Assembly: GCA_965644315.1 (NCBI GenBank)
Contig: CBFFRQ010000041.1
Coordinates: 1 to 64,000 of the forward strand
DNA from: Caecitellus pseudoparvulus
Lineage: Eukaryota > Protista > Bigyra: Bicosoecida
Direction of reading: 5' to 3'
DNA length: 64,000 nucleotides
Positions within the stretch are counted from its first letter, which is position 1, and each line of letters opens with the position of its first letter. Both the position numbers and the translations under genes were made by a program. The notes under the pieces were generated by a model. It was not told the origin of the DNA. It saw nothing but the letters and a program-made list of their open reading frames with translations, and did no database searches. Of this stretch, positions 1 to 21,200 are shown piece by piece.

Positions 1-2
1 GA

Positions 3-3000
3 GGAGCGATGGCCCCAGCCTCTCTCAAACTCCGCGTCCAGGAGCAACTCTCAATGCTGGACGAGGATGAGAGCAGCTGTCTGAGGGAGAGAAAGACGGC
101 AATGCGCACCTGCACCCGGCTCACTGCCAAGCTGAGGAAGAAGACCCTTGCTTGTGTCAAAGCGCGCATCAAAGACCTGGCCAAGTCTGACCCCTTCAAG
201 GCACACGTGCACATTCGGCGGCTTTCAGGGAGACCGCGCAACTCGGGCAGTTCGGCAATATCCTCAGTGATGACAGATACAGGATCCCTCAGCTCAGATC
301 CTGATACACTACGACAGGAGGTGGCGAAACAAATGGGTGCCATCATCAGCAAGCCTACTCCCCCTCGCACACCACTGAAGTATGGACTTGGTCGATTCCT
401 TCCTTCATCAACTCTGGAGTTCCAGCCTCCAGAAGACTGGCTTCCAAACACATCAGAGGTCCTCCGCTGTATGACTGCACTGAGCCTGCACCGCCACCCT
501 GGCTCAGGAAACTTCCAGGCGGAGCATATCAAGTACGCAAGCACACCCTTTCGCCTTGCATACGCTCAGACCTTGATCCACACCCTGTCAAGCGGATCGT
601 GCCCTGAACCGTACCATGGTGGAATAGGCACCCTGATCCCGAAGAAGACAAGCGAGGTGGGCCGGCCAGCAACTTACAGACTGATTGTCTGTAGGCCAGC
701 CCCTGCAAAGCTGTTCTTCTCAGCAGTGGCGGCCTCCCTGGAAAAGTGGATGTCCAGTTGGATATCTCCTGAGCAGGCGGGGTTCACAGCGCGACGCAAC
801 ACTCACGAACAAGTCATCGCCCTTCAAGAAGCAGTCAAAGGGCACTTGCGACACTCACCTTCAACTCGACAAGTTCTCATCCTGTTTGTTGATTTCAAAG
901 GGGCGTTTGACTCGGTCAGCCACTCCTGTATCACTGAGATTCTCAGAGATGCAAACGTCCCTGCTCCGCTTCTCAATCTGGTCAACAGCTACATGCATAA
1001 AGCAACCGTTTCCATCAACACGGCAGCAGGACTCTGCCCCCCCCTGCGTGTCACAACGGGTGTCCCACAAGGGGGTGCTCTTTCACCACTGCTTTTCAAG
1101 ATTGCAATCGACGTTGTCTCAAAGCGTTTGGCAGAACTCCCGCAACAAGGGGTCCAAGGCACTGGTATCTCAACTCCTGACGGATACCTCACGCATACGT
1201 TGTATGCAGACGACTTGGCGTGCTTAGCTACTACCCCATCAGGACTAAATCGAATGTTCAAAGAGGTCAAGACGATTGGAGAACGATCAGGGTTGCTGAT
1301 CAACCCCAAGAAGAGTGGGGTCATGATCATCCCTGGTCGTGATGGGACTTCATCACAACACACCAGCGACAGACAGAAGGCCCTATGGAGATCGAAGCAC
1401 CTGAGAAGTGGTGAAGAGCTGAAAGTGAACGGCACGCCCATCACACGAACTCCCACGTACATGTACCTCGGAGTCCCTATGGCTGAAAACCTCATCCGGT
1501 CCAGAGCACTTGCACTTGAGAAGGCGCAGATGGCCTGCACACATGCTGGGTTCTCCTGCGGAGCGGTCTTCTCAGGGGCATGGTTAGGAGTGAAGCTGAA
1601 GAACCAGATTGGAAGAGCCATTGTTACATCCTCAGCCGACTATGTCCTGTGCACACAAGCCAACAGCCTCTTGATACCTCTGCGACAAGTTGACCGGGGT
1701 GTGTCCAAAGCCCTGAGCAAGAGCCTTCTCTGTACACAGAGCTCACTCATGAGGCCACACAGTGCCGCAACACTCACACTATGCGGTATCAAGCCAGCCC
1801 ACATCAGGTCAACACAGCTTCGTGTGAACCTCTTCCGGAAGATGCTTGCACGCCTCCATGACCGCTCCCCCTTGGCAAAGTCCCTCCTCCTCACCATTCC
1901 CCAAGCCATAGACATGCTACCACCAAGCATCTCGACCGCGTTCGTCGTCCAAAGCACTGTACAACTGCAGCACCACCAAGCCAAACAAACGCCACTACCT
2001 TGGGCACTGTTTGGGATCCTTGACCTGTGGATGTATGGATGTCTGCCCGATCTGAACGATCTGAAAGATGCTTGCCTGGCAGAGGGGTCACGAAAGCAGC
2101 AAGCACTCACAGCAGTTCTCACATGTCTGAAGAAGCCACCACACTCTGCGAAGATCGAGGTGATGGGCATTGCGGTACCACCCCTGGCAACTATAGACAC
2201 CCCTCCGCAGTTTCAGTCACTCACATCATGGCAGACACGACACCAGGTGGTTGCCTCATATCTGCATGTGGTGCAAACCAAGCAAAGCATAGCAGCCGGC
2301 TACTCCACATCGTCAAGACTCCCAAGCGCCATCAAACCACGCCCTCATCACGTTGGCATTGGAGCACAACACTTCACAATGCTGCACCCGATCCCATCTG
2401 GGATCAGTCCCCTCCTGTGGGCATGCGCCGAGGACAAGCCTCTCTGCAACATGGTTCATCAGTGGCAGACACTACAACTCTTACATGGAGGGGATGACCC
2501 AACACTCTACTCGACCTGTCCACTGTGTGCCACTGAAGTCCCTGCAGACCTCCACCGCCACGTCATCCTCCACTGCCACAACCTCAACACACCAAGGCGA
2601 GCAGCCATTGAGAGACTTGCAAATCTCCTTCAAGAATGTGAGGACGAGGCAAGCACTCCGAAGACAACTGTCCAACACCCACCTCAAGCTGTGACTAGAG
2701 CCATACGTGCCAGCTTCACTAGCTTGTGCGTTCCGGAAGACCATGAAGAAGCCATGTACCGCCTCATTCTCTGTGGTCAATGGCCATGGTATTGGGGACA
2801 AGGCGATACAGGCCAACAAACATCCAGAGAGCAGGCCAGTGTGTACAGCTTTCCATACATAAGGTTCCACAAGGGGACACAGAAAAGATCTCCACCCCGC
2901 TCTTGGAAGGATCTCCAGCGGCGCGCTGCTGAGTTTGCTGGGGACGCATGGCGAGCAGTCGTGGCAGCCTTTCTTCGAGACAGGCACCCCGATAGACTCC

Positions 3001-3242
3001 ATGTACACTCCCATGCAAGGCATCTCTGGTGGTCAGTGTTCGGCAGAGACACTCCACTCCCTGGGCACAGAGACGCAGATGCCTCTGTAGTCACCAAGCA
3101 TCCCCGACCACCCAAACCTGCAAGAGTTAGACGCTTCTTTCCAGCACGAGCCGGACAAGTACCTTCCCATGAAGGCAAGGTACAGCAAACTTTGCGGAGT
3201 ATGATTCGCCGGAACGTGGACGCTCAACACGACAGCTCCTGA
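3..3242 (+). CDS. LINE-type reverse transcriptase ORF of element A (N-terminally incomplete)
   Basis: Frame is open from the window edge. RT motifs: LIPK, YRLI, EQAGF, LFVDFKGAFDSV, GVPQGGALSPLLF, LYADD, INPKKS, YLGV. C-terminal CPLC...HVILHC zinc motif. Confidence 0.93.
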   Translation, partial: GAMAPASLKLRVQEQLSMLDEDESSCLRERKTAMRTCTRLTAKLRKKTLACVKARIKDLAKSDPFKAHVHIRRLSGRPRNSGSSAISSVMTDTGSLSSDPDTLRQEVAKQMGAIISKPTPPRTPLKYGLGRFLPSSTLEFQPPEDWLPNTSEVLRCMTALSLHRHPGSGNFQAEHIKYASTPFRLAYAQTLIHTLSSGSCPEPYHGGIGTLIPKKTSEVGRPATYRLIVCRPAPAKLFFSAVAASLEKWMSSWISPEQAGFTARRNTHEQVIALQEAVKGHLRHSPSTRQVLILFVDFKGAFDSVSHSCITEILRDANVPAPLLNLVNSYMHKATVSINTAAGLCPPLRVTTGVPQGGALSPLLFKIAIDVVSKRLAELPQQGVQGTGISTPDGYLTHTLYADDLACLATTPSGLNRMFKEVKTIGERSGLLINPKKSGVMIIPGRDGTSSQHTSDRQKALWRSKHLRSGEELKVNGTPITRTPTYMYLGVPMAENLIRSRALALEKAQMACTHAGFSCGAVFSGAWLGVKLKNQIGRAIVTSSADYVLCTQANSLLIPLRQVDRGVSKALSKSLLCTQSSLMRPHSAATLTLCGIKPAHIRSTQLRVNLFRKMLARLHDRSPLAKSLLLTIPQAIDMLPPSISTAFVVQSTVQLQHHQAKQTPLPWALFGILDLWMYGCLPDLNDLKDACLAEGSRKQQALTAVLTCLKKPPHSAKIEVMGIAVPPLATIDTPPQFQSLTSWQTRHQVVASYLHVVQTKQSIAAGYSTSSRLPSAIKPRPHHVGIGAQHFTMLHPIPSGISPLLWACAEDKPLCNMVHQWQTLQLLHGGDDPTLYSTCPLCATEVPADLHRHVILHCHNLNTPRRAAIERLANLLQECEDEASTPKTTVQHPPQAVTRAIRASFTSLCVPEDHEEAMYRLILCGQWPWYWGQGDTGQQTSREQASVYSFPYIRFHKGTQKRSPPRSWKDLQRRAAEFAGDAWRAVVAAFLRDRHPDRLHVHSHARHLWWSVFGRDTPLPGHRDADASVVTKHPRPPKPARVRRFFPARAGQVPSHEGKVQQTLRSMIRRNVDAQHDSS

Positions 3243-3361
3243 CAATCTTCGCTCTCAACCACCCTCTGAAAAGTGTGGCAAGAGTCGTCGTGTCCCCCCC
3301 CACCGACCCACATGCTCCTAGACACCACCTTCGATTCCCCACATTATAACAAACAACGCCC

Positions 3362-4366
3362 TGACAAGCATACACAGGTCATGCACCCTGCCTGCTGCTG
3401 GATCCTGACCATGCAGCACCGCTGCGTGCCGCCCGTCGCCCCCCAACACCTCCTTCATGGCCAATCCGCCGGTCTACAGGCCGCCACACCATCCCATCCG
3501 GGCCACGATACTGACATGACAGCATACACAGGTCATGCACCCTGCCTGCTACTGGACCCTGACCATGCAGCACCGCTGCGTGCCGCCCGTCGCCCCCCAA
3601 CACCTCCTTCATGGCCAATCCGCCGGCCCACAGGCCGCCACACCATCCCATCCGGGCCACGATACTGACATGACAGCATACACAGGTCATGCACCCTGCC
3701 TGCTACTAGACCCTGACCATGCAGCACCGCTGCGTGCCGCCCGTCGCCCTCCAACACCTCCTTCATGGCCAATCCGCCGGCCCACACGCTGCCACACCAT
3801 CCCATCCGGGCCACGATACTGACCTGACAGCATACACAGGTCATGCACCCTGCCTGCTGCTGGATCCTGACCATGCAGCACCGCTGCGTGCCGCCCGTCG
3901 CCCTCCAACACCTCCTTCATGGCCAATCCGCCGGCCCACACGCTGCCACACCATCCCATCCGGGCCACGATACTGACCTGACAGCATACACAGGTCATGC
4001 ACCCTGCCTGCTACTGGACCCTGACCATGCAGCACCGCTGCGTGCCGCCCGTCGCCCTCCAACACCTCCTTCATGGCCAATCCGCCGGCCTACAGGCCGC
4101 CACACCATCCCATCCGGGCCACGATACTGACCTGACAGCATACACAGGTCATGCACCCTGCCTGCTACTGGACCCTGACCATGCAGCACCGCTGCGTGCC
4201 GCCCGTCGCCCTCCAACACCTCCTTCATGGCCAATCCGCCGGCCCACACGCTGCCACACCATCCCATCCGGGCCACGATACTGACCTGACAGCATACACA
4301 GGTCATGCACCCTGCCTGCTACTGGACCCTGACCATGCAGCACCGCTGCGTACCGCCCGACGCCCT
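3362..4366. repeat. 154-bp tandem repeat, about 6.5 near-identical copies
   Basis: The unit gacagcatacacaggtcatgcaccctgcctgc...gggccacgatact recurs every 154 nt (ORF-track echoes at 3379, 3533, 3687, 3841, 3995, 4149) with only a few substitutions between units. Confidence 0.97.
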
Positions 4367-4807
4367 ACTTGCGCTTGTCTGCTGACAGCGCGCCAGCGCT
4401 CACAGCCCCAGCAAGTGGTGAAGTCAGGATCCCGTGACGCGACACGATTAAATGATGCAGGACTTGCACGATGATAACACTTTATCCAAGCAGTTGATCT
4501 GTTCGTGCTGCAACAGTCGCTCCACAGCTCATGGGCTCACCTGTACAATTGCGGAAAACGCACATGGATCCTTCGATTTCCGCACACGCACCTGCTCTCC
4601 AAAGCCATGAAACCGGCGCACGTGCAAAGAGAATGCCCTTTCAGTGACTAATTTTACGTTCCTGCATGAAGTGGTGTTGAGATTGTGACTGAAAAGTGTG
4701 AGCCCCGGTGTGATTGCCTGGTTTGCTGAACTGTGGCACCTACAAGTTCCGTGAATGATGGGAAAATCAGTGTTTCGAGGACCACCAAGACCTTTTCCTT
4801 TTGGAGC

Positions 4808-5000
4808 GGATACTGAAGTATCCTAGCACATGGCGACATATATAACGGACTTAAGTCTGTGTTTGTTGCAGAACCATGCAAATGGTAGCCATGCTGATGT
4901 GAGTGACCGCCTCGCGGTTTGTAACATCTACTGTGAAGCTCCAGCTGAACCGCACATGAACAAGTGTGGAAGTGAAATGCATTACATCTGACTAACCTAA
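4808..5000 (+). ncRNA. Structured 3'-terminal RNA module, copy 0 (divergent; element A)
   Basis: Stems: GGATAC/GTATCC, CATGGC/GCCATG, ACGGAC/GTCTGT, ACCAT-GCAA-ATGGT, GATGT/ACATC, CCGCAC/GTGTGG. Then AATGCATT and CTAACCTAA. Same order as copies 1 and 2, with compensatory changes. Confidence 0.75.
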
Positions 5001-5005
5001 AGAAG

Positions 5006-5198
5006 GGCGGCTCATACAACGGACGTATGTCCGTGATGGCTGCAGACCCACGAGAGTGGGAGCCGCTGTGGTGCCTACTGCAGTGCATTCGTGTGCTGTG
5101 GTACGCAAGGCACCACGAGTGATGCCCAAGCTGTACCGTGCAAGAGTGTGCGGAGGCAAGTTGCAATGCATTGAGTGAGCTAACCCCTAACCTAACCT
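5006..5198 (+). ncRNA. Structured RNA module, copy 1 (5'-truncated B-type copy / pseudo-LTR) ending CTAACCCCTAACCTAACCT
   Basis: 5006-5069 is identical over 64 nt to 10354-10417. The rest is colinear with covarying stems. It lacks the upstream P0 hairpin present in copies 0 and 2. Confidence 0.8.
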
Positions 5199-8100
5199 CG
5201 TGTCATGGAATGTTGCTGGGTCGTGTGGCCGCAACCTCCACAAGGTTCTCATCTGCGCCCAGTCTGTATGCCTCCGATCATCCAGACTGGTCCTCTGCCT
5301 CACGGAACCTGGTGGCCACGGTACACTTGACTCGGAAGTCACGGGGCTCCAGTGTTTCAGGCCCTCCCCCCCAGATCGTCCTCCCGGCCGCAGTGAGGTC
5401 GCACTCCTGGTCGACCGTCGTCTACGCGCCACGCAGATAGTCAACCTTGGACTCGATGGACGCTGTGTGGTCGCCTGCTCCATCCCCATGAAGCCAAGGC
5501 CCCTTGCTGTCATCGCGGCCTACGTGCCCAACTGGCACACGGCCCAGCGGAAGAAGCCACTTGCAGACCCAGACACTAAGCTGCCCCACCGCCAAGAGGT
5601 CTGGGAGCAGCTGGCCAACGCTGTGAAAAGTCTGCGAACCACGCATATGATCTCCCTTATGGGGGACCTCAACTGCCATCCTGGTGATGGAGGACTTCCT
5701 GCTTGGGACGCAGCATGCTGGCAGAACCGTACAGATGTTGCTGACCCCATCCCCGACGTCAAGGAGCTCGCCATCGTGTGCGAGCATGGCAACCTTGAGC
5801 CAGCCGGGCTCGCCGGCTGCTCCACCCATGCTACGAACGGCAGAGCCCTGGACCATATCCTCGTCTGCCCACTGCTCAAGGCTCAGGTCAAGGTGCCACA
5901 CACAGTGACGACAACATTCTCCAGTGCAGGCAAGCAGAATCCGGAGAAGTCGATCTTGAGTGACCACTACCTCCTGTCAGCAACAGTCCAAGTTATGATC
6001 CCTCCACGGCCAAAGGGTGCCCGGCATGCCCACTCTTCCTTCTCCGTGCCGCCATGGTGGGCATCATCTACACGTGAAGGGCGCAGGGCACAGACCATGC
6101 ACAGGCGGCTGCTTGACTCAGCCATCACTGCTTCCCCATCCCCCCAACCCGGCCAAGCTGCAGACGCCCTGCTGTCAGGCCTGGATGATATGGTTGCCGG
6201 TGCTGCCCGACAAGCCCATGCCAAGTGCAAAGTTGTGGCACCCCCATTGCTTCAGGCCCTCGCCGACATCCGGACCCTCAGCTCTGTCAAGAAGCGGATG
6301 ACAGTGAGGACGGGGCGGATCAAGAAGCAACTCCGCAAGCTTCATCGACGCCGGCACCTTCTTCAGCATAGCCAGTCACCCCATGCCCCAGCTGCCCTGC
6401 GTTGCGAGGATGAGCGTAAGCATATGCTCATGGAAGACCTTGCTGCCACTCAGGTTGAAAGGAAGAAGGCGATGCGCAAGTGTACTCGGCTGGTTGCCAA
6501 GAAGCACAAGGCTGCCATGTTTCAGGTCCAGCAGCGCATCCGGGACTTTGCCCGGCTTGACCCCTTCACTGCTCACCTGCATGTGCGGAAGCTGTCCGGC
6601 AGAAGGAGGAAGGGCACCTCGTCGTCCATCCAGTCAGTCATGGACGACAGCGGCACCCTCATCACAGACCCATCACAAGTGCGGGCTGTGGTCAGGGACC
6701 AGATGGCCCAGATCATCAGCCCCCCTCGACGCCAAGTCGTGTCCCTGAAGTTCGGACTGGGTCGGCTGCTCCCACTGGCCCCGACACACATGTCGACTGA
6801 AGCCGCCTGGACCCCGAGCGTGGACCATATCTTGAAGAAGATCCAGTCCCTGAGCCTCCACCGCAACCCTGGCACAGGGCACTACCAGGCTGAGCATGTC
6901 AAGTATGCCAGCGAAGACTTCCGGAAGAGGTACGCTGCCGCTCTTCAACAGGCCATCAGCACCGGGTCATGTCCAAGTCAGTACCACAGTGGGGTGGGGA
7001 CACTCATCCCCAAGACTGCCAGCAAGGCCGGGAGGGTGCAGACATACAGGCTCATTGTCTGCCGTCCCCCCCAGGCCAAGCTCTTCTTCTCGGTCGTGGC
7101 CTCGTGTGTCGAAGACTGGGTGCAGCACTGGATCTCACACGAGCAAGCGGGCTTTACTCACGCCCGCAACACCCACGAGCAGATCCTCGCCTTGCAGGAG
7201 GTGTCCACTGCCCACCTGCGCGCCAAGCCCACTGCCAGTGTCCTTGTCCTTTTCGTGGACTTCAAGAGTGCCTTTGACACTGTCAGCCACGAGGCGATAC
7301 TCGAGATCCTCGAGTCAGCAAACCTCCCACAGCCCCTGCTCAGCTGCGTGAAGGACTACATGCAGCGCGCCACAGTGGCCATCCACACTGGCCATGGTCT
7401 CTGCGACCCCCTCCCAGTCACCAACGGCGTCCCCCAGGGTGGCGCACTGTCACCTCTGCTGTTCAAGGTGGCCATCGATGTGCTCTCTCAACGCCTGAGA
7501 GAGCTGCCAAGTCAGGGAGTGTCAGGGGCAGGAGTGCCGACACCCCGCGGCCACGTCACGCATACTCTTTATGCGGACGACCTTGCTTGCCTTGCCACCA
7601 CCCCTGCTGCCCTCCATCGGATGTTCCTCGAAGTGAAGGCCTTGGGCAGCCGGGTGGGCTTGGCCATCAACCCGCGCAAGTCCGGGGTCATGGTCCTCAC
7701 CGGGGCGCAGCAGGTCAATGGGGTGTCAGCCACGGAGCGGCGGAAGCTCATCTGGCGATCCCGGTGGCTGAGGTCAGGGCAGTCCATGAAGGTCAAGGGG
7801 ACACCCATCCAGCGCACGAGCACCTACTCGTACTTGGGTGTCCCCCTGTCTGAAACTGTCAGCCGAACCCGACTGCTTGCCACGAGGCAGGCCACTCTAT
7901 CCTGCACTCGGGCTGGGTTCGGCTGCGGTGCCCTCCTCAGTAGTGCGTGGCTGAGTCCGATCCTGAAGCAGCGGATCGGCACTGCATCTATCAACAGTGC
8001 CGCCGACTACATCTTGGCGTCCCAGGTCAGCAACTCGGTGCTGCCTTTGCGGGACGTCGACCGTGGACTTGCCATCGCCTTCAGCAAGGCCCAGCTGGGG

Positions 8101-9687
8101 ATGCAAAGCTCGCTGGCACGCATGCACAACTATGCGAAGCTTGCTGTGTGCGGCGTCTTGCCAACACACATCCGGGCGACGAAACTCCGCAGCAACATCT
8201 TCATGAAGCTGCTGAAGAATGTCCAAGTGCCCACCCCCATGGCCAAGGCGCTGTCCATCAGCCTGCGCCAAGCCCTGGACCTGCTGCCCTCCCCCCTGGA
8301 CATGGCCGGCATCTTCTTGGCCAATGTCCGCCTCGACAGGCCAGGCGCCGGAGGCATCCCAGATCCGTGGGCCTTACACGGTCTACTCGACCTCTGGCTC
8401 CTTGGATGCCTCCCTGACCGCGCACGCCTGGAGGCTGTGTGCCTGGAGCCGCCGCCTGGCTCGGCACCAGACGCACACGGGGTCGACATCACCGCTGGGA
8501 TGGACCCCGCACCCCCCAAGATCCAGCTGCTTGGACTCGCGGCGGCGGAGTCCTCGGATCTGTCCGCGGCCCCCCAGTTCCCGGACACCACCCCCTGGGC
8601 CACTCGGCAACGCGTCGTTGCCTCCTTCCTCCATGTGGCCCAGACGGTCAGGTGCAGTGCAGTTGGCTACACTCCCACGGGGGAGATGAAGGCCACCAGG
8701 CGTCCGAAGGAGTACCACATCGGTGTGGGCGCTCGCTTCTTCGCCTGGCTGCACCCGATCCCTTCCTCTGTGAACCCAGTCTTCTGGGTCCACGAAGGTG
8801 ATCAGGAGAGACGTGTGAAGGTGCACCTGTGGCAGACGCTTCAAGTGTTCAACGGGGATGACACCCCTACACTGTTCAGCGCCTGCCCCTTGTGCCACAG
8901 CGTCTCGTGGTGCAGCCTGCAGGAGCACGTCCTTCTTGACTGCCCCCACCACGCTCTGGTCCCTGCGAGAAGGTCCGCCCTGTCCGAGGTGCGGACCTTC
9001 ATGTCCAGATCCAATGATGCAGTGAGGGGGGTTGCCAACTGCCAGTACCTTGAAGTACCCCCCTCACTGCTGGATGCCGTCGTCCATGCCGAAGAAGGCC
9101 GCTTGTTGGGCCGCCCGCGTCGCCTGCTGCTGCTGCGACTGCTGCTGTGCGGCCAGTGGCCCCACCGATGGGGCCAGCCCCCGGCACAGCAGCCTTGGAG
9201 TCCCGAGGCAGCCGCGGTCCTGAGTAACCCCCATGTCACTCTCCGCGGCTCCTCGGGTCCACTCCGCCCCCCCAAGTACTGGCGCGAGGCCCTGGTAGCC
9301 GCCACGGGCCTCGCTGTATCTGCGTGGGACGCGGTGGTGACTTGCATGCTCAGCCTTACCTCTCGTGCCGACCGTCACATCCAGAGGCACGCCCGGTACC
9401 TCTGGTGGGCGGCACATGGGCGAACTTGTCCTCTCCCAGGTTACTCGGCTCCTGATCCGAGTACTGTGAGGAAGCATGTGCGGGACGTGAAGACGCGGCG
9501 CTTCGAGCGCACTTACTTTCCTGTCAGGTCCCCTCGTCGGCCGCCTCGCTCCTTCACGAGGCAGGCCACCTTGCTCGACTTCGGGCTGGCACGGCCGGAA
9601 GTCCACGAGGAACCTCCGGCACCGTCGATGTCATCCTTGGCGTCGTCCTCTGGGTCGTCCTCGAAGTGCTCGTCAGACTCTGAGTAG
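5191..9687 (+). CDS. APE endonuclease-reverse transcriptase polyprotein (~1,498 codons, no AUG at the 5' end)
   Basis: APE motifs: SWNVAG, LCLTE, AAYVP, GDLN, LDHIL, SDHY. RT motifs: LFVDFKSAFDTV, GVPQGGALSPLLF, LYADD, YLGV. Zinc motif CPLC...HVLLDC. The frame opens right after TAA 5188-5190 and the ORF-track start at 5200 is GTG. Confidence 0.93.
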   Translation, partial: PNLVSWNVAGSCGRNLHKVLICAQSVCLRSSRLVLCLTEPGGHGTLDSEVTGLQCFRPSPPDRPPGRSEVALLVDRRLRATQIVNLGLDGRCVVACSIPMKPRPLAVIAAYVPNWHTAQRKKPLADPDTKLPHRQEVWEQLANAVKSLRTTHMISLMGDLNCHPGDGGLPAWDAACWQNRTDVADPIPDVKELAIVCEHGNLEPAGLAGCSTHATNGRALDHILVCPLLKAQVKVPHTVTTTFSSAGKQNPEKSILSDHYLLSATVQVMIPPRPKGARHAHSSFSVPPWWASSTREGRRAQTMHRRLLDSAITASPSPQPGQAADALLSGLDDMVAGAARQAHAKCKVVAPPLLQALADIRTLSSVKKRMTVRTGRIKKQLRKLHRRRHLLQHSQSPHAPAALRCEDERKHMLMEDLAATQVERKKAMRKCTRLVAKKHKAAMFQVQQRIRDFARLDPFTAHLHVRKLSGRRRKGTSSSIQSVMDDSGTLITDPSQVRAVVRDQMAQIISPPRRQVVSLKFGLGRLLPLAPTHMSTEAAWTPSVDHILKKIQSLSLHRNPGTGHYQAEHVKYASEDFRKRYAAALQQAISTGSCPSQYHSGVGTLIPKTASKAGRVQTYRLIVCRPPQAKLFFSVVASCVEDWVQHWISHEQAGFTHARNTHEQILALQEVSTAHLRAKPTASVLVLFVDFKSAFDTVSHEAILEILESANLPQPLLSCVKDYMQRATVAIHTGHGLCDPLPVTNGVPQGGALSPLLFKVAIDVLSQRLRELPSQGVSGAGVPTPRGHVTHTLYADDLACLATTPAALHRMFLEVKALGSRVGLAINPRKSGVMVLTGAQQVNGVSATERRKLIWRSRWLRSGQSMKVKGTPIQRTSTYSYLGVPLSETVSRTRLLATRQATLSCTRAGFGCGALLSSAWLSPILKQRIGTASINSAADYILASQVSNSVLPLRDVDRGLAIAFSKAQLGMQSSLARMHNYAKLAVCGVLPTHIRATKLRSNIFMKLLKNVQVPTPMAKALSISLRQALDLLPSPLDMAGIFLANVRLDRPGAGGIPDPWALHGLLDLWLLGCLPDRARLEAVCLEPPPGSAPDAHGVDITAGMDPAPPKIQLLGLAAAESSDLSAAPQFPDTTPWATRQRVVASFLHVAQTVRCSAVGYTPTGEMKATRRPKEYHIGVGARFFAWLHPIPSSVNPVFWVHEGDQERRVKVHLWQTLQVFNGDDTPTLFSACPLCHSVSWCSLQEHVLLDCPHHALVPARRSALSEVRTFMSRSNDAVRGVANCQYLEVPPSLLDAVVHAEEGRLLGRPRRLLLLRLLLCGQWPHRWGQPPAQQPWSPEAAAVLSNPHVTLRGSSGPLRPPKYWREALVAATGLAVSAWDAVVTCMLSLTSRADRHIQRHARYLWWAAHGRTCPLPGYSAPDPSTVRKHVRDVKTRRFERTYFPVRSPRRPPRSFTRQATLLDFGLARPEVHEEPPAPSMSSLASSSGSSSKCSSDSE

Positions 9688-10329
9688 CGGGCGATGTGTG
9701 CAGAGCGCGGCGCGAGGCGGTGCAAGCTTACGGCGTGGCGTGGTGACAACCACGGTCGTGGCTGAGCGAAGTGCGAGAGCAGGGTGATGTGATGTCCTTG
9801 ATGAATGACGGAACCTGCGGAAAGTTGGAAGATGATGAGGTGTATATGTCCAGTATACTTACATGATGGCTCGGGGTCCATGTGCAGCTCGAGATAGATT
9901 CCTGTGACGGAGCGCGCGGAATTTGGCAGGGTGAACACGCGGGCGCGCGGGGCAACGTCGCAGGCGGGGCGCACCGGTCCTCAGGGCCTTGATCGATGGA
10001 ATGACTGGATGATCTGTGAAGAAAGGGAGGTGTTCTTGGTGTTCTTGGTGCGCGGGTGGCGTTGTTCCGGCGGTGCGCGCTGCTACCACCGGCGTGGTGC
10101 AGTGCAGCACCGTCGTGAAACGCCACCCGAAGGCGGCCACTGCGGCTCAGGACAGCGCGCAGTGGCCCCAGGCACACGTGCAGTGCCTGGCAAGGGCCAG
10201 GAGAAGCGGGGGGTTTCTGAATTATGAAGCGAAGTGTGGACTGGGACGAAGCAGGAGTGGACCCGGCCCCCTCTGGCTCAGCCGACTGAGCCGAGAGGGC
10301 GCGGGCGGGGCAGTTCGACACGTATGGGC

Positions 10330-10532
10330 GGGCGCGGGCGCGCCCTAGCAAGCGGCGGCTCATACAACGGACGTATGTCCGTGATGGCTGCAGACCCACG
10401 AGAGTGGGAGCCGCTGTAGCGCTCCTGGTGTGCCTTGTGCACAGCAGCGAGCGCTACATGTGATGCCCAAGCTGTATCGCGTGCAAGCGTGAAGGCGACA
10501 TGCAATGCATTAAATGAGCTAACCCCTAACCT
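10330..10532 (+). ncRNA. Structured 3'-terminal RNA module, copy 2 (element B) ending CTAACCCCTAACCT
   Basis: Stems: GGGCGC/GCGCCC+TAGCA, GGCGGCT/AGCCGCT, ACGGAC-GTAT-GTCCGT, CCCAC-GAGA-GTGGG, TGTAGCGCTC/GAGCGCTACA, TCGCGT-GCAA-GCGTGA. Then AATGCATT and the telomere-like tract. Confidence 0.8.
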
Positions 10533-10880
10533 GGGCAGGCACCGAGTTGGTGCTGACACCGACCGACACAGAGGAGAGCCACGCAATGAGGCCATCCAAC
10601 GCGCTTTCAGGCGGCAAGCGGGTACTCAGCAGCACTGCGTACATCTGGGCCCAGCCGGCCATGACACGGAAGACTCCAATGAGCAGTCCCCTGCTCTGAC
10701 CCTCCTTGCTTTCCCGATCACTCGTGCGCAGGGCCAAGTACACGAGGAGCCCCGTGAACAAAACCCAGGAGCCGATGCTCTGCAGAAAGCCACAACTATC
10801 ATCGGGGCACTTCACGCAAAGCAGCTGTGGGCTGGACCTTGCCCAGCCTTCAGCAGAATCACCGCAGAAAGCCTCTTCTC
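10533..10880 (-). pseudogene. Truncated paralogous fragment of the Cys-rich/transmembrane region of the giant surface protein
   Basis: FCGDSAEGWARSSPQLLCVKCPD...GVFRVMAGWAQMYAVLLSTRLPPESALD...TNSVPAQ aligns by eye with MCAECESGWVRSSIGTLCQQCTD...GLIRIVSGWAQVAGVILSLRLPPRTFLD...MTFEPIQ of ORF 12215..26359. Homology stops at GTTAGGGGTTAG. Confidence 0.75.
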
Positions 10881-10957
10881 TCATGTGAACTGAAGCCAAC
10901 ATGCACAACCAAGCCAGAGTCAAGCCCAGAATCAGACAACGCACATGCCCACCCGTG

Positions 10958-12214: not shown

Positions 12215-15200
12215 TCAAACATCGTCGTCCCCGACACTCTCAAACAACGAGAGATTCGGATTTGCCGAGCTGCTAGGGGCTTGGACTGCAGCTTCGTCGC
12301 CTTGCGGCCTAAGGCTATCTTCGCGACTCCCGGAATCGCATTCAGATTCGTCAGAGAGGAATGAAGGCAAAGTAGCCGCGGGCTCAGGTGCGATGGGCCA
12401 CGCTGCGAGTGCGGGTTCGTCGACGGTCGAGTCAGAGTCTATCGAGTCCCAGCTATCAAAGGCGCTCAAAACCAAACCCCTTGAAGCCTCCTTCTCACGA
12501 ATGGCACCTGCCTCCTCAACTATGGCGGACCCCTGCGCGCTTGCTGGACGGGCATGAAGTGCCACAAGTCCCAGGCTGCCAGCTGTACTCCCGGCGGGAG
12601 ACGCCAGTGAATCTGGCAAGGCTGACCATGAAGGGGCAAGCGGGCCCTCCAAAACGTCAGAAGTTTGGCAAGCCTCAACTTCGTCGCTTGCTGCACGAGC
12701 AAGCCCCGGGGGAGGGGAGGAGGCAGCCATGCATGGGCTGCAGGCTCTGGGCATGGCTTCTTTCTGTGCTGATTCATAAACGTTCAATCTCGAATCTTGA
12801 GAGGTTTCGCCAGACGCGAATATTGGCTTCGAGTGGGTCGAACGTGGATGGGGTATGGGCGAGGGGGAGTCCTTGACAGTGTCAGTGGAGCTGTCGCGCG
12901 CAGCAGGCGCAGATTGCAAAACAGGCTGAACCATTTGCACAGCAAAGGGGCCGCAGCAGTTGGCAGCGCAGCAGTGAGCCTTGGATGAACTGAGAACAAA
13001 CTTTGAAAACAGCGCAGGGGGGAGACAGCCTCCCACAAAGCAGAGACCCGCACATCCTGGCCCAAGCCCGTACTCACATGGCCAGCAAAAAGCAAGGCAG
13101 CAACTCTCACGGACTGAGACTCTCCAAGCCCAAACATTCCACACATCGATAGTGGGGGTGCACCATGACTGTTCTCTTGTGTGACTGGCGTTTGAATGTC
13201 CCACCTTGCGGCTGCGCTGCCTCCCCCCAGCTGCCTCGCTGAGAGTCCTCATTGGTTGTTCAGCAGCCCATGTGGCGCCGGCCCGGTCAGTGCCAGGTGC
13301 TCCGTGCAAAGCAGAATGCTCAATCGCTTGTGCTCTTCTGGAGAATGTGTCTGCAGTGACCTCAGCGACCCCCTTTGCCCGCAGCATGGCCATGTCCAGC
13401 TTCTCCAGAGCATGAGGCCAGCGCGTGGACACCACCGCGGCCCAGAGCTTTGTTGCGATGTACGCAATGAGCAGAAGGAAGCACACGTGGGCGACTGTCA
13501 TGAGAATGGAAACGGCAAGATCAAGTCCCTCAACGCGGGAGTCAGCGCCAGACTGGGACGTGCTCAGGCCTGCGAGCACAGACAGAAGCAAGACACCCAA
13601 GGAGAGCGCTTCAGCGTGGTTCATGACCCTGAGCTGGAAAGGCTTACAGACAAGCTGAAGCATGAGGGAAGCGAACAACAGCAGCGCCATGACAGCGCTT
13701 TGAGTGAAGGGCTCCACCACAACAACGGCAGCCATGTTGATGAGCACCTTCCTGGTCAGCACCACGACCTCCCAGAACCAGAAGCCGTTTCCAGCGACCA
13801 CCGACCGGCACCCCATGCGTTTGGAGCGTGGCTGCGTCTGAAGACGCAAGGCTCGGACAGGTTCAACCCATTCAACATTCTTCCTTAAGAACCTTGGCTG
13901 GGAGGCTGGGCTGTCCCGGTCAGTTGATGTGGAAAATGACACATGCTTTGACTCACTTGGGCGCTTCGAAGCACTAGTGGGGGTGTCTGCCAACTTACTC
14001 TGTGCCAAGGACTTCTCCTTCCGCCATCCCTGTACAGCAGCACTTTCTTCTTCACTCTCTTCATTTCCTCGTGCCGCCAATTTATCGTTGGAGGGATCCC
14101 CCATCGCAAAGCCAGCGTACAGAAACCCAAACATGAGGAGATTCCGACTGGTTCCCAGATTGAAGCGGATGCTGAACAGCAACAACCATGCAGCAAGGGG
14201 GATCCCAAGACCCCAGACAAGTAGGCCTATCCAGGCGAGCGCCTGCATCACAGGAAACTCGGCATCCATGCTTCCATGGGATACAGCGTGAGTGAAAAGG
14301 CGGTGGCCAAAGACCGGCTCATCCAGCAAGTTCAGCATGCGCAAACAGGCCCGGGTGACGCTAAAGTGCACTAAAAGTAGCAGCACCAATGATGCTCGAG
14401 TGCTTCTTGCAAATGTGTTCCTCCAAATGCTGGTTTCCCGCGAGCGACCTGGATGCCCATCCTGTCGCATGGGGAGGGATGCACTGTGAGGCAAGTCGCT
14501 GGCTGCCGTTGTCTGAGAATCTGATGCATGGGACTCAGGACTCGAATCCGGTGCGACAACAACCGACAGGAGCTGGCGCGGCTGGCTTCCCTGAGAATGC
14601 GTGGAGGTTGTGGCTTGCTCATGCCAAACCTGGCGAATGGCCATCTGGATGGCTACCACAACCGCCCCGATTGCAAAGGGAGCAGCAATGCACAGAAACG
14701 GAAGGCACAACGTGACCACGAAGGTTTCATAAAAGCCCATCTGTGTTGTGCACTGGATAGGCTCGAAGGTCATGTCAGCACCGCCGCCTGTCGAACCCGC
14801 CACTCTCAAGAAAGAGTCAAGAAATGTCCTGGGGGGGAGTCTCAAGGAGAGAATCACACCAGCCACCTGTGCCCAGCCAGACACAATACGTATGAGGCCG
14901 TCCTTTGCACCACCCGACGCAGACTGCATCTTGGCCAGAGAGGGAGTGTTGGAGGCCTGGTACGCAACGAGGCAACCGAGCAGGCCAAGCACCAAACAGG
15001 TGAGAGTCAGATTCAGAGAGCCGTCGGTGCACTGCTGGCAAAGTGTGCCAATACTTGAACGCACCCATCCACTCTCGCATTCAGCACACATCACCCCACG
15101 GTGCCCTTCCACACACATCGTGGAGGTGCCATTCGAATCAGGGACACATGCAGCCGGGGGCAGGCAACCGTGCATGCGGCTGGTGGACAAGACCGGGGCC

Positions 15201-18200
15201 TTGAACCCATCTAACTCAGAAGCCATGCCTTGCAGCCGGCGTTTGGAGGTTCCAGGCAGAGCTTCTCCCGCAAGCCCAAGCTTGCGCAAGGCAGATTCTA
15301 CCGCAGCTGACCTCCCTCTCGCTAGGACTGGCGATGCGGAATCCTGACCTTCAAGAACGACACACTCTTCACACCAAAACCCTGGTTGGATCTGAAGAAC
15401 TCCCCTTGGACAGGTGACACCAACTGAAGGGCACGCTACACACAGGGTCCCAGTGGCGGTCGCATACTGTTCAGACGGGCACGTCGAGCACCTTGACAAA
15501 CCGTCCACACTTGTGGGGCGAATGGAGCCTGGGGGACAAGGCTCGCAGTGCTTGCCATCACTGAATGCAGCGGTACCACCGCCTTCTGTCACGGGCAGCA
15601 CAATGTCTTGATTCCCTGGAGCGCACACACACTTCACTCCGGAAGTATCGAGGACCTGCCGTGCCGGACAAGATGGGGAAGAGACGACAAAGGGAACCAT
15701 GCCGCCGACCCCTCCAGCAACCGGCTGGCCTCGAACAAACACCCCAAGTACAGCCGCACCAGCTCGCAGAGGGTGCAAGGTGAACTTTGAGACAGATGGC
15801 GTCAGGCCGGCTTGCGACACTCGAGCAAGGGCAGCTCCAGCCACATTGTGGGACAGCAGCTGTACACTGGTCTTTGCTGGAACACCTGGCAGGCCAAGCT
15901 GCCTGTCTCGCACTTGGATGACAATGCGAGCTGGATCGTCGCGGGCAGTTCCAGGGACGTGCACAGTAGCTCCAGCTAAGCTCCTGGCAGAAGCGCTCGT
16001 TCTTCTCGCTACAGCACTGCTTCCAACCCCTTGGTTTTGCATCGACTCTGAGAGGCTACTTCGTAGCAAGTGGTGAGACTCTGCGTCCATGAAACTCTGA
16101 TGGGAGCTACCATGGCCTGCCAGAACGCTCAAGTAAACTGGGATGGTGCGCATTGGCTCCGACTGAAACGTGCCAAGCGCTTCTGACCACACAGCAACTT
16201 GAACCTTGAGGAGCCCTACGTAGTCTCCAGGAGGGGAGCACAACTCGAAAGTGGAGCGCCCAGAGGAAATCAGAACACCAGGGGTCAAGTTAGGCATTGC
16301 AGAGCTGTTCAAGGGGCTCATATATGGGTAAAACACGTCACGGGTCCCAGGTGGCCTTGCTGCCATCCCAAAGGAGTCACCATGCAACTCGGGTACGGAG
16401 CACTGAAGGCTGTTGCGATCAGGAATCCTGTGCCGCACATCGAGTACCACTGCCGTGGCAGATGACGGCTCAAGCTCGAAAGATGCTTCGCCGAGCACGT
16501 GAAGCCAAGCAGAGGATGTGCCAGCGCTTGAAGCTTCGAACGGATACCTCACCCCTTTTGCAGCGGTGGCATTGCTAACGGGTGATTCATGCTGAGCAAC
16601 GGTCACCAAAGATCGGCCAGTTGCCAACAAACTGCTTAGCTGCAGTCGAAGGGATCCTCTGCGTCCGGCCTGAATGGAAGTTTCAGGGCGGAACGGGGTC
16701 ACGGCCACGGAGGACACTTGCAATAGAACTTCAACAAGCACCTCGACAGGCCCTCGCTGTCCGGAGGTCCGCACCACGATAAAATGCCGATGAAATCCAA
16801 GCCTCAGTGTGCCGCCAATGCGCACCTTCACGACCAAGGAGCTCTGCGGCAGCAACACACCTGATTGGCGCCCATATGCGTTGCCTTCCACCAGCTCTAG
16901 CCAGTCAGGAAAGTGCCCTCGAGAAGACTCTGCGACAAACTGCAGCATGCCACCGCCATCATTGGCGATTGTAAAGCTCTGCGTCTGCTCCTTCCCCGGG
17001 GCCAAGGTGGCAATGAGCAGCGGTGGAAATACAAGCGGAGAGGGGGATAGCACGGTGAGCCGCACGCTAATAGTCTGGGGAAGAATTGACTCTAGTGTTG
17101 GTCTCTCAGGGTCAGCATGGCCCTCAACGACAAATGCATCATCGAGCAGGCTTCGGTATGTAGGTTGCACGAGCAACGTTCGACGGTACGTCCCGGCCGA
17201 AAGGCCGGCCGCAGAGAGCCTCAACTGAATCACATCATCCGCTGTGGGTCTCCTGAGCATTGTAACATTCAGCCAATCTACTCCATCTCCGCTGCGACCA
17301 GGCGCCACCTCCCAGCCAATGCCACCAGAACTCAAGACTGCTACTTGTCGTTCCTTGAAGCTTTCAAGACCTGAATCAAGAACATACACCCATGACACGT
17401 CTCGCGGAAACACCTGAAGTGCTGGTGCCGCTGTGGGAGTTACGGATGGTGTCACAGTGGGGCTTGCACCCGGCGAGGAAGTGCTCTTTGGTGTTCTCGA
17501 CGGTGACGGGAGCCTCGAGGGAGTTGGCGAAACCGATACCCGCGTCAATGGAGCCTTCGATGGCGCCGAAGAGGGAAAAGCTTCACCACCCGTTGATCCA
17601 CTGGATGGAGCTACTGACAGGGGCAGCTCCACCTGCTGGCCACGCCCGCTCGAACCTGAGACATTGAACGCCAGCACGAAGTGTGGAACCTCAGACAGCA
17701 GTCGCTCGCCTGAATCAATGACCGGGAAGCCACGGAAGTTACTGCGGATCTCAACGACAAACGGAAAGAGGGCCCCTGCTGTAGCACCGACAGATGCTAT
17801 CCTTGCCCCAAACCACTCCTGAGGCACAGAACAAGGACTGTACAGCGTGCCGCTCTCAGTCAGGCAGACAGGCTGTGACACAGACACTGGAAGGCTTCCA
17901 CCTGCTGCGTCAGCAAGGGTTAGTGAAACAACGACAGAACTTTCGCTTCTTGCCGAGCCTGCAATTGAAACGAACCCCAACGTGTGGTCCAACCTAAGAC
18001 CACCCACACCAGACCGAACAAGGTTGACAGGGCGACCACCAAAATCATCGCCAAGGAACACAGACAAAGGCTCTGGAGGAACGTCAAGAGTGGGAGGATG
18101 CTCAGGACTCTGTGTTGCAGTTTGAGTTGGGGTAACAGAGGCAGTTGGGGAGACACTCGGGGTTGACGTGCTAGTTGAGGTCAACGTTGGAGTACTCGAC

Positions 18201-21200
18201 GAACTGCTGGACGAAGATGGTGACTTGGACGGAGAGGAAGTTCCTGTACTGGACACTGATGGGGTAGCCGCTGACGAAACACTACTTGTGCCGGTTGCAC
18301 TCACAGTTGGACTACCACTACTTGTGCTACTAGGTGAAAACGTCCCAGACGCCGTACCGCTCGGACTGCCCGTCACTGACGCCGTCCCGCTCACCGTCCC
18401 ACTCACACTGGGTGTCCCCGTCGCCGTGCCGCTCGCTGTGCTCGTCAAAGACGCCGTACCGCTCCCTGACGCCGTCACCGATGCCGTGCCGCTCGGACTG
18501 CCCGTCACTGACGCCGTGCCGCTCGGACTGCCCGTCACTGACGCCGTCCCGCTCACCGTCCCACTCACACTGGGTGTCCCCGTCACCGTGCCGCTCGCTG
18601 TGCTCGTCACAGACGCCGTACCGCTGCCTGACGCCGTCACCGATGCCGTGCCGCTCGGACTGCCCGTCACTGACGCCGTCCCGCTCACCGTCCCACTCAC
18701 ACTGGGTGTCCCCGTCGCCGTGCCGCTCGCTGTGCTCGTCACAGACGCCGTACCGCTGCCTGACGCCGTCACAGATGCCGTGCCGCTCGGACTGCCCGTC
18801 ACTGACGCCGTCCCGCTCACCGTCCCACTCACACTGGGTGTCCCCGTCACCGTGCCGCTCGCTGTGCTCGTCACAGACGCCGTACCGCTGCCTGACGCCG
18901 TCACCGATGCCGTGCCGCTCGGACTGCCCGTCACTGACGCCGTCCCGCTCACCGTCCCACTCACACTGGGTGTCCCCGTCACCGTGCCGCTCGCTGTGCT
19001 CGTCACAGACGCCGTACCGCTGCCTGACGCCGTCACAGATGCCGTGCCGCTCGGACTGCCCGTCACTGACGCCGTGCCGCTCGGACTGCCCGTCACTGAC
19101 GCCGTCCCGCTCACCGTCCCACTCACACTGGGTGTCCCCGTCACCGTGCCGCTCGCTGTGCTCGTCACAGACGCCGTACCGCTCCCTGACGCCGTCACCG
19201 ATGCCGTGCCGCTCGGACTGCCCGTCACTGACGCCGTCCCGCTCACCGTCCCACTCACACTGGGTGTCCCCGTCACCGTGCCGCTCGCTGTGCTCCTCAC
19301 AGACGCCGTACCGCTGCCTGACGCCGTCACCGATGCCGTGCCGCTCGGACTGCCCGTCACTGACGCCGTCCCGCTCACCGTCCCACTCACACTGGGTGTC
19401 CCCGTCGCCGTGCCGCTCGCTGTGCTCGTCACAGACGCCGTACCGCTGCCTGACGCCGTCACCGATGCCGTGCCGCTCGGACTGCCCGTCACTGACGCCG
19501 TCCCGCTCGGACTGCCCGTCACTGACGCCGTCCCGCTCACCGTCCCACTCACACTGGGTGTCCCCGTCGCCGTGCCGCTCGCTGTGCTCGTCACAGACGC
19601 CGTACCGCTGCCTGACGCCGTCACCGATGCCGTGCCGCTCGGACTGCCCGTCACTGACGCCGTCCCGCTCACCGTCCCACTCACACTGGGTGTCCCCGTC
19701 GCCGTGCCGCTCGCTGTGCTCGTCACAGACGCCGTACCGCTCCCTGACGCCGTCACCGATGCCGTGCCGCTCGGACTGCCCGTCACTGACGCCGTCCCGC
19801 TCACCGTCCCACTCACACTGGGTGTCCCCGTCGCCGTGCCGCTCGCTGTGCTCGTCACAGACGCCGTACCGCTGCCTGACGCCGTCACCGATGCCGTGCC
19901 GCTCGGACTGCCCGTCACTGACGCCGTGCCGCTCGGACTGCCCGTCACTGACGCCGTCCCGCTCACCGTCCCACTCACACTGGGTGTCCCCGTCACCGTG
20001 CCGCTCGCTGTGCTCGTCACAGACGCCGTACCGCTCCCTGACGCCGTCACCGATGCCGTGCCGCTCGGACTGCCCGTCACTGACGCCGTCCCGCTCACCG
20101 TCCCACTCACACTGGGCGTGACAGACGACGTTACACTGGAGCTAGGAGTCACTTGAGGGGTTGCAGAGTTAGAAGGCGACTTGCTTGGCGTGGGTGTTCC
20201 ACTGGCAGTGATGCTCGGAGTCTGTGAACTTGAGGGAGATACTGATGGTGTCGCAGTTGTGGTGCCTGACACTGACGGAGTGGATGACGCAGACGAAGTT
20301 TGGCTGGGTGTCACTGAAGGTGACGGGGAGAAGGAAGTTGTGGGCAAAACCGCTGTGCACACCCCTCCTGAGTGTACCGTAGCTGCTGCAGGGCATGCAG
20401 GGCCAACGCCGGACTGAAGTACTTGAGTGACTGCAGACACTCTGCCACCTTGCACCCTTTCTTCCATGAGCAATAGTTTGCCCCCTCCCACAGTTGCTGC
20501 GCCTCGCCCAAAACTGCTTTCTGCTCGGACGGGAAATGGGATGCCTGCGACCCCCTGCCGAAGCAGTTTGCCGGACGCGACAGCCCCCTCCACCCCAACT
20601 GTCATCTCCACGAACCCTCCCTCCAACCCTAAACTCGAACCCACTAAGAGACTGCTGGTGTTGTGCTCGGCATCATGGTCAAGCAGGGCCATCGCGCTGC
20701 CGAAGCTGGTCAATGACAGTTGTGGGTTTGACGTGGCATCCAGAGCGACAATCCTGGAAATAAAAGCAGCACCAAAGACGGGATCAAGTGAAAACAAGAA
20801 TATTGCTCCACCACCTTCAAGTGCACTTGGCCAAGAGGGAGCCCCCACTGCCACGCGGAAAGTCTCGGGAGCGGGTTGGGAAGGCATGAGAGCAAGTGAG
20901 GCGCCAAGCATGCTGCCTTCTGGGACGAAGGCCAGTACAGATAGGTTCTGCCACGCAAACGTGGTGGAGTTGTTGGCCTCTGCGAACGTCACTATCATGG
21001 TGTCTCCCGTGCTGTTCAATCGCCCGGGAGCACCGACGAGGAGTGAAACATTGCCCGGGCCGCCAGCAGCACCGATGGGTGCCAAAGACGAAGCGAATGC
21101 ATCGCCAGCATGCACAGAGCTGCAGCAGGCTTGAGGAGCTTGAGAAGGGTCAATTACATACAATCTTTCCACATAGACGCCCTGACCCCTGGGCAGCACG

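Follow-up and report, generated by a model that had tools for sequence, protein, structure and literature searches.

The first 10.5 kb of contig C41 of the bicosoecid protist Caecitellus pseudoparvulus are a one-way stack of telomere-specialised retrotransposons without long terminal repeats (LTRs), that is, long interspersed nuclear elements (LINEs) of the APE type. The contig (242,505 bp) belongs to a 30.6-Mb, 215-contig genome assembly, and the stretch analysed here, hereafter the window, is its first 64,000 nucleotides (C41:1-64000). Two divergent LINE copies bearing APE and reverse transcriptase (RT) domains, elements A and B, lie head-to-tail on the + strand with a 179-nt stub between them, and each of these three units ends in a structured 3' module followed by a short tract of C-strand telomere repeats. 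We consider it probable that this tract is carried by the element RNA and anneals to 3' ends of telomeric or non-telomeric DNA, while the module holds the RT, and that the APE domain provides a second route, into duplex telomere DNA.

Part of this picture had been proposed from the letters of the window alone. The original prediction of tandem, divergent RT elements on the + strand was borne out by Pfam searches: the open reading frame (ORF) at 9-3242 (+) contains RVT_1 (E=2.7e-29), the one at 5200-9687 (+) contains Exo_endo_phos (E=1.1e-07) and RVT_1 (E=1.3e-31), and the two RTs are 60% identical. The three C-rich tracts read exactly as predicted, and the window junctions show neither an A-run nor a visible target-site duplication (TSD), again as claimed. 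The elements had also been correctly recognised as APE-plus-RT LINEs, but not their incompleteness: the start of the contig interrupts A, and B, which corresponds to residues 671-2135 of its nearest database relative (P0001, described below), lacks about 2.4 kb of its 5' end. This truncation accounts for the lack of an AUG where its frame begins, at the first strand of the APE domain.

Genomic distribution and architecture of the family

Placed on the assembly, the window opens at the very start of C41. Its first position falls inside element A, so the assembly stopped within the array and the telomere of this end is itself unassembled. The host telomere repeat is CCCTAA/TTAGGG, the type that the original prediction called for: across the assembly, a three-unit pattern has 12,668 forward and 3,934 reverse matches, against 0 for a control pattern. 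All nine contig starts that we fetched enter CCCTAA at base 3-4 and carry arrays of 0.26-5.7 kb, after which come head-to-tail elements with telomere tracts in between.

Genome-wide, an RT query gave 112 matches on 56 contigs, and a covariance model of the 3' module retrieved at least 150 full-length copies on 66 contigs. All of these lie within about 24 kb of contig ends, with the 3' end pointing inward throughout. Matches on the + strand are at most about 24 kb from the contig start, even on contigs of 0.4-1.35 Mb; those on the minus strand lie within 20 kb of the right end, a placement that rests on the four contigs of known length (C34, C88, C105 and C208). The copies are confined to ends, keep one orientation and are interleaved with host telomere repeats, which makes them a telomere-specific class. 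Dispersed copies in random orientation, poly(A) tails and an unrelated host telomere repeat, each named in the original prediction as a ground for giving it up, did not turn up in this census. The role in 'telomere capping' that it assigned to the elements has to be abandoned: telomerase-type repeats cap every end seen (9/9), and the genome encodes TERT, an open frame of 1,389 aa on C77 containing its RNA-binding domain (79 bits).

The family has the features of a LINE: an RT of LINE type, an APE (EEP) domain N-terminal to it, no LTRs, a defined 3' end and frequent 5' truncation. Truncation points occur at many positions, while the 3' module is complete every time. The nearest database protein, P0001 (2,159 aa), is 58% identical overall and 68% in the RT, and gives the full-length order as an N-terminal region (residues 1-665), APE from about residue 671, RT and CCHC. 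Intact copies elsewhere in the genome encode one polyprotein of about 2,150-2,390 aa, with single open frames up to 2,386 aa. P0001 and P0012 are the only close database proteins; the others, unnamed and metagenomic, reach at most 33% identity. Among solved structures the RT is closest to L1 ORF2p (3e-21), with R2 next (4e-17). A phmmer search with the APE domain found nothing among solved structures, whereas its structural model, with a pLDDT of only 57.5, matches the APE1 and L1-EN fold with probability 1.0 (Foldseek), and the catalytic motifs E, D-N, D and D-H are kept in 7-8 subfamily sequences.

Subfamilies stand at 35-100% RT identity and all retain open frames. The ratio of nonsynonymous to synonymous substitution rates (dN/dS) between them is 0.11-0.22, at saturated dS, and copies within one subfamily are 99-100% identical on different ends with different flanks. 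Judged from these sequence comparisons, the element lineages are constrained and recently active.

The family also includes a very abundant 2.9-kb element, the commonest unit beside the terminal repeats. As it encodes only a homologue of P0001 residues 1-665 in addition to the shared 3' module, it qualifies as an RT-less coding partner. Among the 150 module matches listed, 61 carry the same score as located partner modules.

Pfam gave nothing credible for the N-terminal region of the elements or for their C-terminal 330-360 aa, and a protein atlas contained no usable match for the N-terminal region, including the domain described next. Residues ~314-564 of this region, in full-length elements and partner alike (L035:2074-4044 on C18), have a probable papain-like cysteine protease or deubiquitinase fold. 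N342, C348, H508 and D527 are invariant, with papain-like spacing, in 8 sequences of 26-46% identity; VIA-align returned 38 chains at Z of at least 5, nearly all of them Josephin, staphopain, C39 and PLpro, the best at 8.1, although a Z of about 8 is borderline. This domain may cleave the polyprotein at the APE boundary. Full-length elements and partners also have a common conserved 5' leader (L033:1263-1300 and L033:4219-4260, on C135), the first ~30 nt of which contain an inverted repeat of CCTAA/TAGG units resembling the telomere repeat. This could assist the action of telomerase or of capping proteins on the finished cDNA end. A second RT family, 34-35% identical to element B and with P0012 (2,150 aa) as a relative, occurs near contig ends, including C136:4008, C147:54392, C42:707494, C134:16371 and C171:11300, with open frames up to 3,394 aa.

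The 3' module, its telomere tail and a severed gene

The original prediction also held that each tract follows the same folded module, and comparative analysis agrees. The three modules of the window are homologous and about 170-200 nt long (Table 1). An alignment of 16 copies from about eight lineages, partner included (70% mean identity), yields a multi-helix consensus fold of 44 pairs, of which 29 display compensatory changes on both sides. In this fold 93.4% of the cells are paired, a figure that drops to 33-45% once the partners are shifted by 1-3 columns. On four of five measures no shuffle out of 500 attained the observed value; on the fifth, the count of further pair types, 126 of the 500 did so. 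Near the 3' end of the module, a single-stranded CAAGCTG and a palindrome, AATGCATT, are almost invariant. The palindrome (4976-4983, 5164-5173 and 10504-10511 in the window; 10 nt in the B types) stands 7 nt ahead of every tail and is a candidate site for RNA dimerisation or protein recognition. Rfam has no family for the module, telomerase RNA included (best E=0.056, all scores far under the gathering scores), and the description of the 3' RNA as 'telomerase-template-like' is thereby reduced to an analogy.

The tract starts with CTA directly after the module in all 52 copies examined, and with CTAA in 51 of them; an A-run is absent at all 52 junctions. Such a recurrence of module plus tract goes far beyond chance. 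Tails at the 49 non-redundant junctions have a median length of 15 nt, which 26 of them do not exceed; the shortest measure 3-5 nt, and only two are longer than 100 nt. A tail may be followed by a further element, either from its 5' end on or 5'-truncated, by a long telomere tract or by DNA that belongs to no element. Irregular C-runs (2, 4 or 5 residues) make up 25 of 96 (26%) in the tails and 6 of 3,064 (0.2%) in terminal arrays (Fisher p=2.7e-34), and tails with irregular repeats can be as long as 34 nt or more. With irregularity so far above that of terminal arrays, the tails were not made with telomerase fidelity. At the other end of full-length elements, the phase in which the distal telomere repeats join differs between 5' junctions, which fits telomerase extending a finished cDNA end.

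The window provides two junctions at which the tail can be compared with the DNA it adjoins, and at both this DNA is non-telomeric and overlaps the tail by 2 nt, CT. At 5198/5199, where the tail of the stub meets element B, full-length copies on C135, C18 and C30 have internal coding sequence, with only CT in common with the tail.

The second junction, 10532/10533, joins the tail of element B to a broken gene. Bases 10533-10868 are a repeat present on at least 14 chromosome ends. On C187 the same repeat lies inside an 865-aa minus-strand ORF with weak matches to cysteine-rich domains, and the window copy of this gene is severed at residue 316 of 865, exactly at the tail. Leftward of this point, gene sequence carries on both in the paralogue and in contigs of three public runs, with only CT in common with the tail. 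Since the paralogue has no telomere repeat at the break site, the 14-nt tract most likely came with element B. The proximal flanks of C30, C31, C44 and C135 have no paralogue among the compared sequences of this genome, so that the window break is the only demonstrable one. Strain polymorphism at 10532/10533 is not claimed, because the contigs running past 10531 are at repeat depth (~725, against 37 for unique sequence) and represent paralogues rather than the orthologous locus.

The ~865-aa subtelomeric proteins (L042:5382-7979, minus strand) have weak receptor-like cysteine-rich matches, NCD3G and DUF7630, both below Pfam cut-offs. At 10868 the window copy of the gene (10533-10944, minus strand) likewise departs from the paralogous sequences, a sign that a breakpoint of recombination may lie there.

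Table 1. Features of the telomeric stack and the adjoining gene fragment (window coordinates)
Feature	Position	Strand	Remarks
Element A coding region	1..3242	+	5' part cut by contig start; ~residues 1074-2128 of 2159-aa P0001; RT YADD at 1203; C-terminal CCHC 2517-2576
Element A 3' untranslated region (UTR)	3243..4807	+	Includes 154-bp tandem repeat, 6.5 copies, 3360-4366, 97% matches
Element A 3' structured module	4808..4991	+	Covariance model match, 124 bits
Element A telomere tail	4992..5000	+	9-nt C-strand tract
Stub of B1-type element	5001..5179	+	Module alone, extreme 5' truncation; covariance model 171 bits
Stub telomere tail	5180..5198	+	19 nt, irregular; final CT common to internal sequence of element B
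Element B coding region	5199..9687	+	5'-truncated at first APE strand; 1495-aa open frame; APE 5200-5967; RT 7009-7845, YADD at 7570; CCHC 8884-8943
Element B 3' UTR upstream of module	9688..10339	+	Sequence
Element B 3' structured module (B2 type)	10340..10518	+	Covariance model 190 bits
Element B telomere tail	10519..10532	+	14 nt, irregular; final CT common to paralogous gene sequence
Subtelomeric membrane-protein gene-family fragment	10533..10868	-	92% identity to residues 205-316 of 865-aa paralogue; ends exactly at tail; marks healed break

Only element A has the 154-bp tandem repeat in its 3' UTR. With a GC skew of -0.23 over 2001-4000, the + strand of the repeat is strongly C-rich, and the telomeric G strand accordingly G-rich. 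The remaining window contains long intron-free ORFs at 58-71% GC, among them one of 4,714 aa (12215-26359, minus strand) directly proximal to the subtelomere, with nested tandem repeats of 30, 132, 294 and 426 bp at 18341-20152.

Proposed priming on DNA ends and competing explanations

How would such arrays arise? The transcript is expected to end in the multi-helix module followed by C-strand telomere repeats (CUAACCC...). The RT would bind the module, as suggested by its covariation and by its presence in the RT-less partner, and the repeat tail would base-pair with the G-strand or with any free DNA 3' end and so prime cDNA synthesis, which is what the junctions point to. Synthesis would frequently abort, leaving the 5'-truncated copies that we observe, and the next element or telomerase would then extend the new end, which would give the outward-pointing stacks and the telomerase-type caps seen at the fetched ends. 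Through its conserved APE domain the element can probably insert into duplex telomere repeats as well. The fixed phase of the tract, its 3-nt minimum, the 2-nt microhomology and the irregular repeats indicate that it most likely behaves as part of the element, not of the target.

Applied to the window, this scheme gives a history in three steps. A terminal deletion would have ended inside the subtelomeric gene at 10533, and element B would have primed on that end. Its cDNA would have aborted at 5199, and the resulting end would have primed a B1 RNA, itself aborting after 179 nt; the end of the stub would in turn have primed element A. This is the simplest history of the window stack, but template jumping within a single event would yield an identical product.

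The public runs containing the stretch are chiefly marine metagenomes, and in two marine metatranscriptome runs we found low-depth contigs of the element B ORF, 3' UTR and module. In one contig the module is followed by an irregular tail and then by other sequence, which is compatible with read-through transcripts.

Several points weigh against priming by an RNA-borne tail. The RNA-library data are assembled contigs at a depth of 2.6-5.8 that may include DNA, and no RNA 3' end was seen. The original prediction that the 3' tract of the RNA primes on chromosome ends is upheld in that the tract behaves as a part of the element and a gene is broken at it, but the RNA 3' end that it implies was never observed. 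Telomerase first adding a few repeats to a break or a critically short end could also give short tails. Purifying selection on the APE domain speaks for the importance of endonuclease nicking, and some elements lie between long perfect telomere tracts (127-547 nt), as insertion into duplex telomere predicts. Some ends are mutual segmental duplicates (C18 and C30), so the junctions are not all independent events. Finally, as C41 begins mid-array, the terminal placement of the window array is inferred from other ends.

Could the elements instead be strict TRAS/SART-type insertions, with APE nicking the duplex G strand after TTAG, the RT starting at the last module base, and the flanking tracts all being target DNA? 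Such a mode would account for the conserved APE motifs and APE1/L1-EN fold, for a repeat phase that is fixed at all junctions and for the elements with long telomere tracts on both sides. However, tails of at most 15 nt at 26 of 49 junctions, down to 3-5 nt, are too short for a repeat target, the two window junctions lie on sequence that full-length copies and the paralogue identify as non-telomeric, and the tails are irregular at a rate (26%) unlike that of telomerase-made arrays (0.2%). We regard this alternative as unlikely.

It is far less likely that the arrays stem mainly from recombination or segmental duplication together with telomerase healing, retrotransposition being rare and the junction pattern inherited. 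Exchange between ends does take place: C18 and C30 are both arranged as partner and 17-nt tract, then full-length element and 5-nt tract, with an identical 15,501-bp interval between tracts, an arrangement (L035-L037 and L043-L045) that is a segmental duplication between subtelomeres. The 336-bp flank repeated on at least 14 ends and the many module copies with identical scores point in the same direction. Recombination clearly spreads arrays between ends, but it cannot generate the variety of truncation points and tails, and the numerous different 5' truncation points and tail lengths speak against it as the origin of the arrays. So do divergent subfamilies that keep open frames at the low dN/dS given above and the near-identical copies of one subfamily on ends with different flanks. 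An assembly artefact or contamination at contig ends, which a contig beginning within a repeat might bring to mind, can practically be dismissed, with the same structures on 66 contigs and with element pieces and a module-tail junction in independent public runs from four studies.

Beyond priming by an RNA-borne tail, a bolder and rather doubtful idea is that the element RT, kept on its own RNA by the 3' module, acts as a second telomerase-like enzyme, copying the CUAACCC tail reiteratively and with slippage onto free 3' ends, thereby seeding, where ends are broken or eroded, both repeats and element DNA that telomerase then extends. Tails on non-telomeric DNA, the CC, CCCC and CCCCC units and the gene broken at a tail are consistent with it. 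If true, the family would be a living intermediate between LINEs and telomerase and would provide a cell that has telomerase with a system dedicated to chromosome healing.

Relation to known telomeric retrotransposons

A 2023 survey of known telomeric cases covers TRAS/SART, GilM/GilT, Zepp, MoTeR, Tx1-1_ACar, Athena and HeT-A/TART/TAHRE, and telomere-dedicated retrotransposons are known from just a few lineages: insects, Giardia, Chlorella, the rice-blast fungus, an anole and rotifers (PMC10088271). We found no description of a family like that of Caecitellus in the full-text literature on telomere retrotransposons of stramenopiles, Cafeteria or thraustochytrids.

Closest in general design are the R1-clade elements TRAS1 and SART1 of Bombyx mori which, like the present family, are APE-type LINEs restricted to telomere repeats in fixed orientation, alongside repeats made by telomerase. 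The SART1 RT reportedly needs a structured 3' UTR, and read-through telomeric repeats in the RNA are said to help set the start site. TRAS/SART elements differ in having poly(A), two ORFs with a zinc-knuckle ORF1, and a sequence-specific nick; the Caecitellus elements have a telomere-repeat tail, a single polyprotein with a putative papain-like fold in its N-terminal part, and junctions on non-telomeric ends. Poly(A) and separate ORF1 and ORF2 are what define TRAS/SART, as opposed to the 52 junctions without an A-run and the single long frames found here.

Stringent-type LINEs such as L2, CR1 and eel UnaL2, with its partner UnaSINE1, have a 3' stem-loop recognised by the RT, a short repeat tail subject to slippage, and a partner that borrows the 3' end. 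The conserved 3' structure, the repeat tail in place of poly(A), the tail slippage and the partner with a shared 3' end recall our family. However, these LINEs are dispersed, have a tail repeat with no relation to that of telomeres, and are partnered by non-coding short interspersed elements (SINEs).

The HeT-A, TART and TAHRE elements of Drosophila form polar head-to-tail terminal arrays and heal broken ends; beside the autonomous element there is a very abundant partner that codes for protein but lacks an RT (PMC5537684). Polar arrays, an RT-less coding partner and broken-end healing are likewise seen or proposed in Caecitellus. The Drosophila elements belong to the Jockey clade, have poly(A) junctions and live in a host devoid of telomerase, whereas Caecitellus has TERT and long TTAGGG caps. 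Of the traits that characterise the Drosophila system, an RT-less coding partner outnumbering the autonomous element is shared; terminal elements in a telomerase-less host are not.

Penelope-like elements (PLEs) offer the nearest parallel for the tail. The 3' telomere-repeat stretch of Athena/Coprina is thought to anneal to the G overhang, and the elements form subterminal arrays, with telomerase caps and 5' truncation, as the work of Gladyshev & Arkhipova (2007) is summarised in PMC10088271 and PMC8557442. The same 3' terminal telomere repeats, subterminal arrays under telomerase caps and 5' truncation characterise the Caecitellus family. The RT of Athena/Coprina is PLE/TERT-like and comes with no endonuclease, in contrast to the LINE-type RT, nearest to L1 ORF2p, and the conserved APE described here.

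In Magnaporthe, MoTeR1 and MoTeR2 are an RT-bearing and an RT-less element sharing their ends, found only in TTAGGG telomeres, where they destabilise chromosome ends (Starnes et al. 2012, as outlined in PMC10088271). Confinement to telomeres, an RT-less partner and interleaved short telomere tracts are common to both systems, but MoTeR is CRE/SLACS-like, has a restriction-like endonuclease and bears its telomere-like repeats at the 5' end. Endonuclease-independent L1 integration at dysfunctional telomeres and breaks is a further precedent, as presented in PMC4700185 (Morrish et al. 2002, 2007). There too a free 3' end of DNA, with microhomology, serves as primer for a LINE RT, and the products are truncated and lack a TSD. 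In that case a dispersed element takes this route as a sideline, in experiments on repair-deficient cells, whereas in Caecitellus it looks like the normal lifestyle.

The family behaves like a blend of known systems, and it lacks the defining feature of each named family with which it was compared, TRAS/SART, the Drosophila elements, PLEs and MoTeR. In a host that keeps telomerase, it joins attributes otherwise divided among them: like TRAS/SART it is a LINE with an endonuclease, like endonuclease-less PLEs it has a 3' tail of telomere repeats, and like HeT-A or MoTeR2 it comes with an abundant RT-less coding partner. Telomeric arrays of these elements account for many contigs of this assembly ending in subtelomeres. 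More generally, the family is a natural system for studying how an RT comes to prime on chromosome ends, a step thought to link retroelements and telomerase, and it allows us to ask whether such elements repair broken ends.

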